Virus record (IMG/VR): IMGVR_UViG_3300020473_001965
Coordinates: 1-64,000 of that record
Reading direction: 5' to 3' (one strand)
Length of the DNA stretch: 64,000 bases
Numbering within the stretch: position 1 is the first letter of the stretch; each line of letters opens with the position of its first letter. Shown piece after piece: positions 1 through 40,789 of the stretch. The translations under genes were made by a program, and so were the position numbers. Below the pieces are notes generated by a model. That model did no database searches and had not been told where the DNA came from. It saw only the letters and a program-made list of their open reading frames with translations.

Positions 1-375
1 TCGGGACGACGGTCTCGTTTCCGATTCCGCCAGAGAGACTTCTATCACCGACAGTTAGATTCTGGAGGATCTTAATGAAAACTCCTTCCCAAGACTTTTT
101 CTTGGTAGTTGCCCTTATCCCGTTTCCACGATGAACCTACAAATCCGTGGATACTCTCAGCAGCATTCCCTCAGTGGTATGAGGACTCATGCATCGAATT
201 GCTGGACGATTCTCAGAGGTACCACCCTCCTTAACTCATCCCCTCTCTTAGTTGGGCGGCATAGTGAAAGAACACCACTTTCCCAAACGAGGTTTTCTCT
301 ACCGCGTGGCTTACACCATTGCGCTTAGGGGTCGGTAATACCACCTAAGTTTATAGACCCGAGAACTGGGGTCTT
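1..375 (-). ncRNA. Candidate large structured non-coding RNA, truncated by the left window edge
   Basis: Minus strand is a run of hairpins (GACCC..GGGTC, CTTAGG..CCTAAG, GCGGTAG..TATGCCGC, CCACG..CGTGG, CCAAGA..TCTTGG, GGAG..CTCC) with no credible ORF; preceded by a promoter and a boxA-like CGTTCTTTAACA. Confidence 0.6.
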
Positions 376-382
376 TTTATAA

Positions 383-434
383 TGTTAAAGAACGTAATAG
401 AAAAGATTATACATAGATAATTTTTCTTGTACAC
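383..434 (-). promoter_or_regulatory. Promoter GTGTAC-N17-TATAAT followed by a boxA-like antiterminator (383-394)
   Basis: Same spacing as the repeated phage promoter family; CGTTCTTTAACA resembles rrn boxA. Confidence 0.6.
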
Positions 435-5353: not shown

Positions 5354-5720
5354 TGGTGGACCCGGCGGGAGTCGAACCCGCGTCCGCAATAACTTCAAAG
5401 TCGAGTCATTCACAGGTTTGTCTAATTTATTCCCAAATTAGAAAGGTAGCTACAAAATTCCCTTTTCCTATGTAGCCTTGGAAAACCACCTGTTTCCAGG
5501 GTAACCATTCTGATTTTTTATTTTTGCAGGATCTCTACCTGTTATCTTAAGTTGGGTATCAAGGTCTTAAGAAACCCCGTCGAATTAAGCGGCTAAGCGC
5601 TGTTCGTAGTGATAATTGTTGTTGGCAATTAAAGTTTTGAAACCGCGTTTAAGGTCAGCTATTTCGTGCGACCACCTGCACTCTCATTCTCCACTACCCC
5701 GTCGAAGCCGTTTCGGGCCC
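5354..5720 (-). ncRNA. ssrA: tmRNA; tag (A)ANNNYHYEQRLAA at 5585-5626
   Basis: 5' GGGCCCG pairs with 3' CGGGUCC-ACCA with G3.U Ala determinant; T-loop GGUUCGACUCC; tag ORF ends LAA-stop. Confidence 0.95.
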
Positions 5721-35539: not shown

Positions 35540-35818
35540 TCACTCCGCAGGAGTCATCTGTGTAGCACGTAGGCGGTCCAGATGTACTCTCTGGAGTTCA
35601 CCGTTACTAAGCACGTCGTACATTTCGTCTTCGTACCATTTCATCGGTCGGCCTTCGCCCCAGTACGACTCGACGACTCTTTCAATGACAAGACCATCAA
35701 CCCACAGCCACTCGTCGAAGCCTTCTAGTTGAGTAGTAGCAACCCAGACTTGTTCGCCCAATTCGAATCGCCAGCGGTTGTTCGCCGTAAACTTCTCTTC
35801 TGCGTTTTTGTCTCTCAT
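35540..35818 (-). CDS. KOW/SH3-like hypothetical protein
   Basis: FELGEQVWV..GLVI..YDVL. Confidence 0.6.
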   Translation of the reverse strand: MRDKNAEEKFTANNRWRFELGEQVWVATTQLEGFDEWLWVDGLVIERVVESYWGEGRPMKWYEDEMYDVLSNGELQRVHLDRLRATQMTPAE

Positions 35819-35834
35819 TTTACTGCTTTCTTTT

Positions 35835-35921
35835 TGGTAGGACAGGCGGGACTCGAACCCGCATGCTCATTCGAGCGAGAGATTTTAAGTCTCTTGTGTC
35901 TACCGATTCCACCACTGTCCC
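35835..35921 (-). tRNA. tRNA-Leu(UAA)
   Basis: Cloverleaf with long variable arm, loop CTTAAAA, CCA. Confidence 0.95.
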
Positions 35922-35927
35922 GAGTTT

Positions 35928-36005
35928 TGGTAGGCTCACCGGGACTCGAACCCGGAACCCGCAGTTTATGAGACTGCTGCTCTAACCTGATTGAGCTATG
36001 AGCCT
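35928..36005 (-). tRNA. tRNA with CAU anticodon, probably Ile2 (alternatively elongator Met)
   Basis: Cloverleaf, loop CTCATAA, AGGCTCA acceptor resembles Ile tRNAs, CCA. Confidence 0.9.
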
Positions 36006-36014
36006 GTAAGATGT

Positions 36015-36130
36015 GAGACACCTGTTTGTTAGTCGATAATAGTTGTATGCGCGTTAATAACCGACTGCTAGGCTGTGCCTCCCTGCGCCCGGGCGAGCGT
36101 TTGTGTCCCTGACCTAATGTCTCCGCCGCC
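36015..36130 (-). ncRNA. Candidate small structured RNA between tRNA-Lys and tRNA(CAU)
   Basis: GAGACA..TGTCTC closing stem, AGTCGGT..ATCGACT; upstream promoter-like ATGAAC..TACGAT. Confidence 0.4.
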
Positions 36131-36177
36131 ACTCTTTATCGTACCGCGCTCCCCGTCAATGTTCATGCCAAAAGTAA

Positions 36178-36253
36178 TGGTGGGCCGTCCGAGACTCGAA
36201 CTCGGAACCTGCGGATTAAAAGTCCGATGCTCTGCCGGTTGAGCTAACGGCCC
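36178..36253 (-). tRNA. tRNA-Lys(UUU)
   Basis: Cloverleaf, loop CTTTTAA, CCA. Confidence 0.95.
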
Positions 36254-36257
36254 GTAC

Positions 36258-36692
36258 GATAGAGTTCCCAGCTTCTCTATCTAGACACAGCCTGTAAAGT
36301 CAGTACTTCGACTACGCTTACGCAACCACGAGATAGCTTACTGCTCGTAAGTCTTACCCACTATCTCTCTGGCCTGTGTCCCCCACTATAAGAAAGAGCT
36401 TTGGTGAGTTGGCACGTATCCCAGTACCCGTTCGCTCACCCTTGTGTTTCGGAAGTGCTCTACCCTCCCGATCTTCGCCGCCCCTCCCTTGTGCACAGGG
36501 AATGGCATTGAAAATGTAAAGTGAAGAGGAGGTAGGAATCCGTTTAGTTCGGCCGAGACATGCGGTTGGTGCATCATGCCTCTCGGTGCCGCGGACCTCT
36601 TGTGACCACCAATACGTCACTCACCGTCAGCTTCTTTGTTCGACGACTGCCGATTCCTACCAGTTCCTCGGACCGCTAAATCCAAGGCCTCT
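36258..36692 (-). ncRNA. Candidate structured ncRNA(s) in the tRNA operon leader
   Basis: Long-range GGTAGGAATC/GATTCCTACC, CCGAGA/TCTCGG, GGTGAG/CTCACC, GACACAG/CTGTGTC and GAGATAG/CTATCTC helices; no credible ORF. Confidence 0.6.
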
Positions 36693-36696
36693 AAAT

Positions 36697-36731
36697 TGTC
36701 AAAGAGCGGAGAGGACCTAATCTTTCGATTC
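36697..36731 (-). promoter_or_regulatory. boxB-like GAAA hairpin plus boxA (CGCTCTTTGACA) antitermination site
   Basis: Resembles rrn leader arrangement; lies between promoter and RNA genes. Confidence 0.6.
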
Positions 36732-36767
36732 CAGACGGCTGAACCATCAGCGCGAGCAGTGTCCTTT

Positions 36768-36808
36768 CCTTACTTTCTTATTCTACCACGTTTGGGGGGT
36801 TTTTACAT
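36768..36808 (-). promoter_or_regulatory. Repeated early promoter
   Basis: ATGTAA-N17-TAGAAT, 41-bp family. Confidence 0.8.
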
Positions 36809-36813
36809 CAAAA

Positions 36814-36890
36814 TGGCACGCCCGATAGGATTCGAACCTATGACCCTCGGCTTAGAAGGCCGATGCTCTATCCAGCTGAGCTACGGGCGC
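36814..36890 (-). tRNA. tRNA-Arg(UCU)
   Basis: Cloverleaf, loop TTTCTAA-type with anticodon TCT, CCA. Confidence 0.95.
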
Positions 36891-36895
36891 TTAGT

Positions 36896-37114
36896 TCATG
36901 TCGTAAATTCGTCTTCGATCCAGTCGTCGTCGTCTTCGTCATCGGCAACGTCTTCGTCCCAAACCATCGGCTCTTCGTCAGCTGACTCGCCCAATCCGTT
37001 CTGTCTGTTCTTCTCATCAATGACACCAGTCAACAAAATGATCTGGCCTTCGTCGTCGTAGACTATATCCCAGTGAAGCTCGCGAGCCATTTCTTCAATA
37101 TCGCTGATCGTCAT
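36896..37114 (-). CDS. Acidic hypothetical protein
   Basis: ATGA coupling; D/E-rich tail. Confidence 0.6.
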   Translation of the reverse strand: MTISDIEEMARELHWDIVYDDEGQIILLTGVIDEKNRQNGLGESADEEPMVWDEDVADDEDDDDWIEDEFTT

Positions 37115-38973: not shown

Positions 38974-39014
38974 CCTTACTTTCTTATTCTACCACAACTA
39001 CGGGTGCGTTACAC
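38974..39014 (-). promoter_or_regulatory. Repeated early promoter
   Basis: 41-bp family copy. Confidence 0.8.
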
Positions 39015-40748: not shown

Positions 40749-40789
40749 CCTTACTTTCTTATTCTACCATGCTCCCACGTATCTTACAC
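40749..40789 (-). promoter_or_regulatory. Repeated early promoter
   Basis: 41-bp family copy. Confidence 0.8.

Follow-up and report, generated by a model that had tools for sequence, protein, structure and literature searches.

Bacterial ribosomal RNA (rrn) operons are protected from premature transcription termination by a promoter-proximal leader, which in E. coli consists of a boxB hairpin, boxA and boxC and acts with NusA/B/E/G, SuhB and S4. Phages carry cis-acting RNA signals of a related kind: the lambda nut sites, which depend on N, and the HK022 put RNAs lie just downstream of early promoters and make the host polymerase resistant to termination. Phage tRNA genes are in addition associated with other structured RNAs. 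The ROOL and GOLLD RNAs, single RNAs of 600-800 nt with unknown function, are encoded in phage and prophage tRNA islands, with tRNAs sometimes located inside GOLLD, and kissing loops are central to their architecture (bioRxiv 10.1101/2024.12.08.627333). The phage T4 tRNA gene cluster contains the stable "species 1 and 2" RNAs (rnaC, rnaD), which are small, of unknown function, co-transcribed with the tRNAs and processed from the cluster. Theta (HDV-like) ribozymes flank phage tRNAs and trim the tRNA precursors.

Here, we examined a tRNA array of an uncultured marine jumbo phage (IMG/VR record IMGVR_UViG_3300020473_001965; 235-kb genome) within a window of 64,000 nucleotides, positions 1 to 64,000 of that record. 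On the minus strand, positions 35835-36890 hold four tRNA genes, a promoter, a folded leader, a boxA-like motif and four structured RNAs, which we term D1 to D4. In transcription order, the features are as follows.

36814-36890 (-), tRNA-Arg(TCT), upstream of the internal promoter; the order tRNA-Arg, 21-37 nt, leader is conserved in several relatives.
36767-36812 (-), sigma-70-type promoter with an extended -10 TGGTAGAAT (TG-G-TAGAAT, 36780-36788), a weak -35-like ATGTAA and a conserved start-site/5' cassette AAGAAAGUAAGGA; the inferred start is about 36773.
36710-36767 (-), Y-shaped leader RNA with closing stem GGAC/GUCC, a long arm (36738-36751) with conserved CUGCUCGC / CGUCUGG flanks, and a short arm AAUC-GAAA-GAUU (36719-36730).
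36692-36708 (-), boxA-like motif CGCTCTTTGACAATTTA (CGCUCUUUGACAAUUUA).
36516-36691 (-), D1, a multibranch RNA of about 175 nt: outer GAGG/CCUC stem; hairpin with invariant loop UUUAGCGG (36666-36687); closing helix GGTAGGAATC (36652-36661) with GATTCCTACC (36531-36540); helix CUGACGG/CCGCGG around the P4 hairpin (36602-36620, loop AUUGGUG); P5 hairpin (36558-36579, loop CACCAAC). The P4 and P5 loops are complementary (UUGGU/ACCAA).
36391-36512 (-), D2, about 120 nt: hairpin CCCU-GUGCACA-AGGG with the palindromic loop GUGCAC (36491-36496); long-range stem UAGAGC/GCUCU (36455-36464 / 36392-36402) enclosing the conserved ACUUCCGAAACACAAGG and a variable hairpin.
36258-36386 (-), D3, about 130 nt: invariant single-stranded 5' GUGGG; P1 GGACACAG/CUGUGUCU (36374-36381 / 36283-36290); P2 CCA/UGG with a variable hairpin insert; P3 UGC-GUAA-GCG (36315-36324); P4 (36298-36313); junction UUACAGG; 3' hairpin P5 (36258-36281) with loop AAGCUGGGAA.
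36178-36253 (-), tRNA-Lys(TTT), directly abutting D3 (4-nt linker GUAC).
36006-36177 (-), D4, a spacer RNA of about 170 nt with a conserved core at about 36015-36115: closed helix GAGGCAC/GUGUCUC (36075-36081 / 36015-36021) enclosing hairpin AGUCG...CGACU (36031-36066), whose loop GAACGCGCAUACAACU is invariant; the 5' third is poorly conserved.
35928-36005 (-), tRNA with anticodon CAU (Met, or Ile2 if modified), abutting D4.
35835-35921 (-), tRNA-Leu(TAA), the last RNA gene, followed without a terminator by a ribosome-binding site and the 92-aa ORF 35540-35818.

The initial annotation had described this locus as an rRNA-style antiterminated operon with two or three unknown structured RNAs among the tRNAs, and what it observed is confirmed: the promoter, the GAAA hairpin, boxA, the multibranch domain, the tRNAs and the closed domain before tRNA(CAU) are each present on the minus strand. 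However, the description was understated. Its "250-nt helical region" (36258-36505) is two independent modules, D2 and D3, which occur apart and in other orders in relatives, and there are four structured RNAs plus a structured leader. The second boxA, near position 390, exists as GTTCTTTAACATT at 381-393 (-), downstream of a good promoter. Its interpretation is partly supported, in that the structured RNAs are strongly supported whereas antitermination is plausible but unproven. The promoter lies inside a cassette GTGGTAGAATAAGAAAG that occurs 3 times in the window with at most 1 mismatch and 5 times with at most 3, against a shuffle expectation of 0.24 at 3 mismatches. The cassette is repeated at 38979-38995 and 40754-40770 and many times in a relative, G001, and TGGTATAAT is conserved at the same distance in homologous leaders.

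To ask whether the RNAs belong to a described family, we compared the region with Rfam 15, a search proposed from the outset. No family other than tRNA was found at the gathering thresholds, and a covariance-model scan of 35700-37100 at E<=10 returned only tRNAs and chance hits. The absence of a hammerhead, twister or HDV core noted in the initial annotation thus extends to all Rfam ribozyme models and aptamers, as well as to ROOL and GOLLD. Only the four annotated tRNAs were called by ARAGORN and the Rfam tRNA model; D3 is a four-way junction, but its arm order differs from that of a tRNA and it has no 3' acceptor partner for GUGGG. A riboswitch or cis-regulatory 5' UTR is likewise not indicated, since the downstream neighbors vary among tRNAs, other modules, ORFs and U-runs. 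A blastn search of 50,697 GenBank phage records with the modules gave no match, and a search with the whole region returned only tRNA hits. Literature searches by topic and by sequence string found no description of these RNAs, and no paper found prints the sequences. The host was not identified: the closest cultured-phage protein match is at about 30% identity, and the only prokaryote-genome hit for D3 is a 3.9-kb contig in a Flavobacteriales MAG.

Every module recurs in related marine phage contigs. D3 was found in 7 IMG/VR contigs and in at least 120 marine metagenome contigs, D1 in about 25 distinct loci, D2 in 18 homologs (by nhmmer), D4 in 3 (L058, L141 and L142) and the leader in about 17-20. 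Two other routes to homologs were less productive: a first D1 pattern scan, GGCAGTCG...CTGACGGTGAG, returned mostly chance hits inside a phage protein gene and was discarded, and a search through neighboring proteins gave only 4 loci, with the 51%-identity relatives lacking the RNAs at that position. Folding energy alone is no better than chance (z-scores of -0.61, +0.29 and -1.03), so the evidence that these are real structures is comparative. In D3 (94 sequences), 95% of cells are paired and 23 of 33 pairs are compensatory; none of 500 shuffles reached the observed paired percentage and covariation score, and slid controls were 31-49% paired. In D1 (25 sequences), 95.6% of cells are paired and 22 of 41 pairs are compensatory, with 0 of 500 shuffles and slid controls of 42-48%; the comparison with one relative, L004, alone shows 10 compensatory pairs. 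In the leader, 97.5% of cells are paired and 9 of 19 pairs are compensatory, with 0 of 500 shuffles and slid controls of 20-53%. In D2, an RNAalifold alignment gave 6 of 11 compensatory pairs; paired cells were not counted and neither control was run. D4 is weak, with 3 of 25 compensatory pairs from four sequences. The D1 loop-loop pair and the D3 P3 helix never vary, so covariation neither supports nor contradicts them. Part of the D3 core is invariant by construction in the 94-sequence set because it was the search pattern, although an independent pattern later recovered 5 further loci (3 distinct D3 variants) with that core unchanged. A lack of conserved structure had been named as an outcome that would overturn the initial annotation, and the comparative data show the contrary.

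The modules behave as independent genes. Each is single-copy in this genome, and across about 70 distinct contigs their order is shuffled, always within tRNA arrays and with linkers of 0-15 nt. The complete 293-kb relative G007 has only D1 and D3, and the 281-kb G008 has only D3. Contigs carrying D3 appear in 4 of 4 marine metatranscriptomes, and one 374-nt contig at depth 18 spans boxA-D1-D3 of a relative. These contigs are low-depth, unstranded assemblies that may include DNA, and they span module junctions, so they do not show processing. In D2, the loop is GUGCAC in 16 homologs, GCGCGC in one and GUGCAU in one; the one double substitution, GUGCAC to GCGCGC, keeps the loop self-complementary. 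The conserved palindromic loop suggests a kissing dimer.

We next compared the leader with the rrn antitermination signal. The segment GCTCTTTGACAA at 36696-36707 (-) is an exact match to the boxA pattern GCTCTTTRACAA and is close to GCUCUUUAACAA. The motif, GCUCUUU(G/A)ACAAUUUA, matches the E. coli rrn leader GCTCTTTAACAATTTA, boxA plus flank, at 15 of 16 positions; the latter sequence was verified in all 5,426 E. coli genomes, about 100 nt upstream of 16S rRNA. It begins about 65 nt downstream of the inferred start (about 85 nt to its 3' end) and about 5 nt after the Y-shaped hairpins, in the rrn order and within an operon of about 1 kb of untranslated RNA. The strict motif occurs only 3 times in the 235-kb genome, and two of the three follow promoters in non-coding regions. 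Among 17 homologous leaders, about 11-12 carry a good motif, and it also precedes D1 in L004 behind a different leader, but it is degenerate or absent in the remaining leaders and absent before D1-D3 of G007, which also lack the leader; the comparison therefore does not settle whether the motif is a conserved part of the leader. Binding of NusB-S10 to CGCUCUUUGACAAUUU and Rho-resistant elongation were not assayed. No phage NusB, S10 or NusG was found, so host factors would be used. Where D3 directly follows boxA, the spacing to its UGUGGGGG resembles the boxA to boxC (UGUGUGGG) spacing, although the GUGGG of D3 also occurs far from any boxA. As in the rrn operon, the transcript is long, untranslated, highly structured and carries tRNAs; unlike it, the unit is phage-borne and has no rRNA, and its hairpin element is a Y-shaped three-way junction rather than a single boxB. 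Nor is it a closed non-coding operon, as tRNA-Arg lies upstream of the promoter and no terminator separates tRNA-Leu from the next ORFs.

With respect to lambda nut and HK022 put, the GNRA-type GAAA hairpin recalls boxB and the two-arm, roughly 60-nt shape recalls put. The order, however, is hairpins and then boxA rather than the boxA then boxB of lambda, there is no sequence similarity to either, and a covariance model of the leader finds one copy per genome; an N-like protein was not looked for. ROOL and GOLLD share the genomic context, and GOLLD env-38 lies downstream of a tRNA-Met in a marine sample. Here several small (115-175 nt) independent RNAs are found rather than one large RNA; given the D2 palindromic loop and the complementary loops of D1, with multimerization only inferred, the data do not place these RNAs on either side of the oligomer-forming property of ROOL and GOLLD. 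The T4 rnaC and rnaD RNAs differ in size and fold, no GenBank phage record shows sequence similarity, and the present lineage is a marine uncultured one. D3, like the theta ribozymes, sits immediately 3' of tRNAs, but no HDV-like double pseudoknot can be drawn.

The best explanation, to which we assign a probability of about 0.6, is a phage transcription unit that makes stable non-coding RNAs together with tRNAs. The host-type promoter, the conserved Y-shaped leader, the boxA-like motif and the four independently folding and independently inherited RNA genes, none in a described family, are what the analysis demonstrates, and the presence of structured RNA genes arrayed with tRNAs is held with high confidence, D4 being the least supported; the steps that follow are inference. 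Host RNA polymerase would start at about 36773, and the nascent boxA would recruit host NusB and S10 with the other Nus factors, so that the polymerase can cross about 1 kb of untranslated, highly structured RNA without Rho-dependent termination; this step is tentative. The precursor would be cut by host tRNA-processing nucleases, RNase P at tRNA 5' ends and RNase E-type cuts in the conserved U-rich linkers such as CUUUAU|G, releasing the tRNAs and four compact RNAs, which is somewhat more likely than not. D2 would pair with itself through its palindromic loop, a proposal about as likely as not, and D1 would be locked, or chained to other copies, by the UUGGU/ACCAA contact. The mature RNAs may act in trans as stable decoys or scaffolds for a conserved component of the host translation or tRNA apparatus, like ROOL and GOLLD. 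Nothing here points to a specific molecular target, and this last step is an unlikely-to-possible guess rather than a conclusion.

Among the alternatives, the one that survives best, although we consider it unlikely, is that the leader and the boxA-like motif have nothing to do with Nus factors. The Y-element could be a 5' stabilizer, a processing site or the binding site of a phage protein, or could act directly on RNA polymerase as HK022 put does, with the boxA match a coincidence in a U/A-rich linker. Consistently, the Y-element is single-copy per genome and also precedes protein genes without boxA, in G001 and G007, and the 10-nt core of the motif occurs 17 times in the genome against about 5 expected, mostly inside genes. 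On the other hand, the full 13-16 nt match is rare and promoter-proximal twice, and it is found at the same place in many relatives, including the one with a different leader.

Less likely still, the modules could be cis-acting spacers that fold only to guide or insulate processing of the neighboring tRNAs, as rRNA operon spacers do, and are degraded afterward without function in trans. Their constant location in tRNA arrays with very short U-rich linkers and the RNA-library contigs spanning the junctions agree with this view. However, loops and junctions such as GUGGG, CGUGGUUGCGUAAGCGU and the P5 loop GGGAR in D3, UUUAGCGG in D1 and GUGCAC in D2 are far more conserved than a passive spacer needs, the same module sits next to different tRNAs, other modules or ORFs, and most phage tRNA arrays do without such elements.

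It is improbable that one or more modules, D3 above all, are self-cleaving ribozymes of a new class that trim the tRNA precursors as theta ribozymes do. D3 usually starts 1-5 nt after a tRNA 3' end or after another module, behind a conserved UUAU|GUGGGGG junction, and has a compact four-way junction with near-invariant joining nucleotides. Against this reading, no HDV-type P1 partner exists for GUGGGGG, and changes in the candidate partner (junction UUACAGG) are not compensated; pairing of GUGGGG with the junction CCUUAC and pairing of the P5 loop with CCAG were rejected because variants are not compensated. RNA-library contigs also run uninterrupted across the D3 5' boundary, which is weak evidence because they could come from DNA or from uncut precursor. 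The D3 P4 loop AGUACU was considered as a kissing palindrome and rejected, because many variants break the palindrome and the whole arm is swapped in other variants.

About equally improbable is that D1-D4 are pieces of one large RNA machine, for example a fragmented GOLLD- or ROOL-like particle that assembles in trans. The tRNA-island context and the D1 and D2 loops would fit, but co-occurrence of the modules is not obligatory, each has its own closing helix, and no inter-module complementarity was consistent across homologs on inspection by eye. Finally, the reading that the region encodes small proteins and that the apparent structure is incidental is refuted; protein-level conservation of the overlapping ORFs was the other outcome set in advance as fatal to the initial annotation. 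Of the ORFs of 88 aa (36354-36620) and 63 aa (36386-36577) on the minus strand, neither is preceded by a ribosome-binding site, the 88-aa frame has a stop in 15 of 24 D1 homologs and spans three modules that are separated or reordered in relatives, and substitutions in helices are pairwise-compensatory.

A bolder and unlikely possibility, still compatible with the data, is that a lineage of abundant, uncultured marine jumbo phages carries a "pseudo-rrn" operon, which would borrow the host's rRNA antitermination and co-transcriptional folding machinery through boxA to build a set of small self-assembling RNAs, for example a D2 kissing dimer and D1 loop-loop chains or rings, that act on the host's translation or tRNA apparatus during infection. 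At least one module, with D3 the best candidate, could then be a new ribozyme or a new class of RNA-only particle.

Four or five RNA classes without an Rfam family, with strong comparative support except for D4, would be added to the short list of phage-encoded structured RNAs of unknown function. Their constant association with tRNA arrays mirrors ROOL and GOLLD, whose role is an open question, and their small size makes structure determination and biochemistry much easier. If the boxA leader works as it does in rrn operons, this would be a phage using the host rRNA antitermination system for its own non-coding RNAs, a possible second phage route to antitermination that differs from the lambda N/nut route.

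The 235,672-bp IMG/VR virus record, of which the first 64 kb were analyzed, is about 87% complete, is found in marine metagenomes and has no close cultured relative. The window carries five tRNAs and a phage-encoded tmRNA (5354-5720, minus strand; Rfam 111.7 bits) with the tag peptide ANNNYHYEQRLAA, and its G+C content varies strongly, from 36-43% over 1-24 kb to 50-60% over 30-48 kb. The initial annotation described an rRNA-style antiterminated noncoding RNA operon with two or three unknown structured RNAs among the tRNAs, and what it saw in the sequence is confirmed and enlarged here. The features, in order of transcription, are as follows.

36814-36890, minus strand, tRNA-Arg(TCT)
36780-36788, minus strand, extended -10 promoter TGGTAGAAT
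36710-36767, minus strand, Y-shaped leader
36692-36708, minus strand, boxA-like motif CGCUCUUUGACAAUUUA
36516-36691, minus strand, structured RNA D1
36391-36512, minus strand, structured RNA D2
36258-36386, minus strand, structured RNA D3
36178-36253, minus strand, tRNA-Lys
36006-36177, minus strand, structured RNA D4
35928-36005, minus strand, tRNA(CAU)
35835-35921, minus strand, tRNA-Leu(TAA)

tRNA-Leu is followed by a ribosome-binding site and a 92-aa ORF, with no predicted terminator between them. The promoter and 5' cassette GTGGTAGAATAAGAAAG recurs at 38979-38995 and 40754-40770 in front of protein genes. In the form GTGGTAGAATAAGAAAGTAAGGAG (36773-36789 in the present operon), this promoter plus 5'-UTR cassette drives protein genes directly, with a ribosome-binding site and start codon within about 15 nt, and about 13 copies lie in the 35-kb relative G001, the record that contains the related locus L004.

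A search against Rfam 15, one of the checks proposed when the region was first annotated, found only the tRNAs, even at E<=10. The modules match nothing among 50,697 GenBank phage records, and no paper in the literature searched prints their sequences. Single-sequence folding energies are no better than those of shuffled sequences (z-scores of -0.61, +0.29 and -1.03), thus thermodynamics alone does not support structure. A lack of conserved structure had been named in advance as grounds for rejecting the RNA reading; the evidence that these are real structures is comparative.

A relative was found through the neighboring RadA-like protein (L004, 88% amino acid identity), and it keeps tRNA-Arg, the promoter, D1 and tRNA-Lys but lacks D2 and D3. 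In this one comparison D1 shows 10 compensatory pairs, and the closing helix changes from GGUAGGAAUC/GAUUCCUACC to GGUGGCGG/CCGUCACC. Among 25 distinct D1 sequences, 95.6% of cells are paired and 22 of 41 pairs have compensatory changes, whereas slid controls pair at 42-48%. The D1 loops AUUGGUG and CACCAAC are complementary over UUGGU/ACCAA in all 25 sequences; because they never vary, apart from one U-G, covariation provides no test of that contact. In several contigs (L101, L062, L055, L088, L123 and L129) another short conserved element, ...CCCGGGGGGAUUUGAUU..., lies between the leader and the first module, upstream of D1 or D3, and may be a further small module.

For D3, metagenome contigs aligned to the region showed a depth spike and consistent variant letters at 36281-36390. 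A 23-nt pattern from this interval found 7 IMG/VR contigs, and a 22-nt pattern found at least 120 marine metagenome contigs, which gave 93-96 distinct D3 sequences. On 94 sequences the D3 structure is 95% paired, with compensatory changes in 23 of 33 pairs; no shuffle out of 500 reached the observed values on any of the five measures, and slid controls pair at 31-49%. One contig, L091, carries a double compensatory change in the short P2 helix. The P3 region is invariant in this set by construction because it was the search pattern, but a second scan with a 5' pattern recovered 5 further loci (L153, L155 and L156; L154 and L157), representing 3 distinct D3 variants, in which the P4 arm is replaced by a different stem-loop (GAGA/UCUC, GGUCAG/CUGACU) while CGUGGUUGCGUAAGCGU stays unchanged. 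In the first three of these loci, D3 follows a tRNA 3' end after only 1-4 nt. Three features are invariant independently of the pattern, i.e., the single-stranded 5' GUGGG, the junction AGG, and GGGA(A/G) in the P5 loop (in all but two of the 94 sequences). In four contigs (L026, L028, L029 and L030), the sequence about 200 nt upstream of D3 ends like a tRNA, with a T-arm and CCA, but is not called by ARAGORN, and it contains stretches that look like a group I intron core (e.g., GAGACUAAACGGGAG...GAGAUAGUCC); it may be an intron-containing tRNA.

D2 has 18 homologs, and 6 of its 11 consensus pairs are compensatory. Its hairpin loop is the palindrome GUGCAC in 16 sequences, GCGCGC in one and GUGCAU in one; self-complementarity survives a double substitution, as expected for a loop-loop homodimer. 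D4 has only three homologs; its 3' two-thirds are conserved, and it has 3 compensatory pairs. The leader folds as a Y, with 97.5% of cells paired and 9 of 19 pairs compensatory. A covariance model of the leader finds exactly one copy in each of the genomes G000, G001 and G007 (a complete 293-kb phage), and none in G008 (a 92%-complete 281-kb phage) or G002.

Each module is single-copy in this genome, and across about 70 distinct contigs the order of the modules is shuffled. The order is tArg-Ldr-D1-D2-D3-tLys-D4-tMet-tLeu in the window, tArg-Ldr-D3-D1-tLys-D2-tGln-D4-tMet-tLeu in contig L058, and tArg-D3-D2-tLeu... in contig L036 (Ldr, leader). The modules always lie inside tRNA arrays, with linkers of 0-15 nt that are usually U-rich, such as CUUUAU|G. 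G007 has only D1 and D3, and G008 has only D3. The modules therefore behave as separate genes, as the tRNAs do, and not as parts of one RNA. Protein-level conservation of the overlapping reading frames had also been set beforehand as a result that would count against the RNA reading, but the 88-aa ORF overlapping D1-D3 is broken by a stop in 15 of 24 homologs. D3 is essentially phage-only: prokaryote data with one genome per species gave one hit, on a 3.9-kb contig (L152, DQKQ01000027.1) binned into a Flavobacteriales MAG, which could be a weak hint at the host or a mis-binned phage contig.

As to expression, D3-carrying contigs occur in four of four marine metatranscriptome libraries. These are unstranded assemblies at low depth that show no ends, and DNA carry-over is not excluded. 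One 374-nt contig at depth 18 spans boxA-D1-D3 of a relative.

We next sought whether the boxA-like motif resembles that of ribosomal RNA operons. In all 5,426 E. coli genomes, CACTGCTCTTTAACAATTTATCAGACAATCTGTGTGGGCACTCG stands about 100 nt upstream of 16S rRNA, seven times per genome, and the phage motif matches GCTCTTTAACAATTTA at 15 of 16 positions. A strict version of the motif occurs three times in 235 kb: here, at 381-393 on the minus strand, and once inside a gene. The initial annotation had inferred a second use of boxA for a noncoding transcript near the contig end, and at window 1-430 (minus strand) a second, strong promoter (TGTGTACAAG...TGTATAAT) is indeed followed by a boxA-like ACGTTCTTTAACATT (381-393) and a conserved noncoding stretch that runs off the contig end. 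This stretch has 80%-identical homologs over about 400 nt in two D3-bearing contigs (L083:4053-4448 and L140:2667-3071) and no Rfam family, and is probably another conserved phage noncoding RNA.

About 11-12 of 17 homologous leaders are followed by [GC][AC]UCUUU[UAG]ACA[AU]UU, and L004, which has a different leader, still has AUACUUUUACAUUUU before D1. In two relatives the Y-element precedes a protein-coding gene and lacks a good boxA (G001 and G007; L017:1520-1578 and G007:C1:43705-43762, the latter also L158:106-166), and in G007 it lies just after a stop codon with no obvious promoter. This fits a need for anti-Rho protection only where there is no translation, although there are just two such cases. 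Against the idea, D1-D3 of G007 have neither element. The phage encodes no NusB, S10 or NusG, thus any such mechanism would use host factors. A U-run directly follows P5 in 54 of 94 D3 copies, and tRNAs often follow, so read-through of terminator-like hairpins would be needed in many arrays.

Taken together, the interpretation first offered for this region is partly supported. The comparative data strongly support structured RNAs among the tRNAs, whereas rrn-style antitermination is inferred and stands as a good hypothesis that was not tested experimentally. The closest analogues are the rrn leader for the control element and, for the products, the ROOL, GOLLD and T4 rnaC/rnaD RNAs of phage tRNA islands, although tested membership fails for every known family. 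No function is known for D1-D4. Our best guess is that they are processed, stable, partly self-associating RNAs that act on the host's translation or tRNA machinery.
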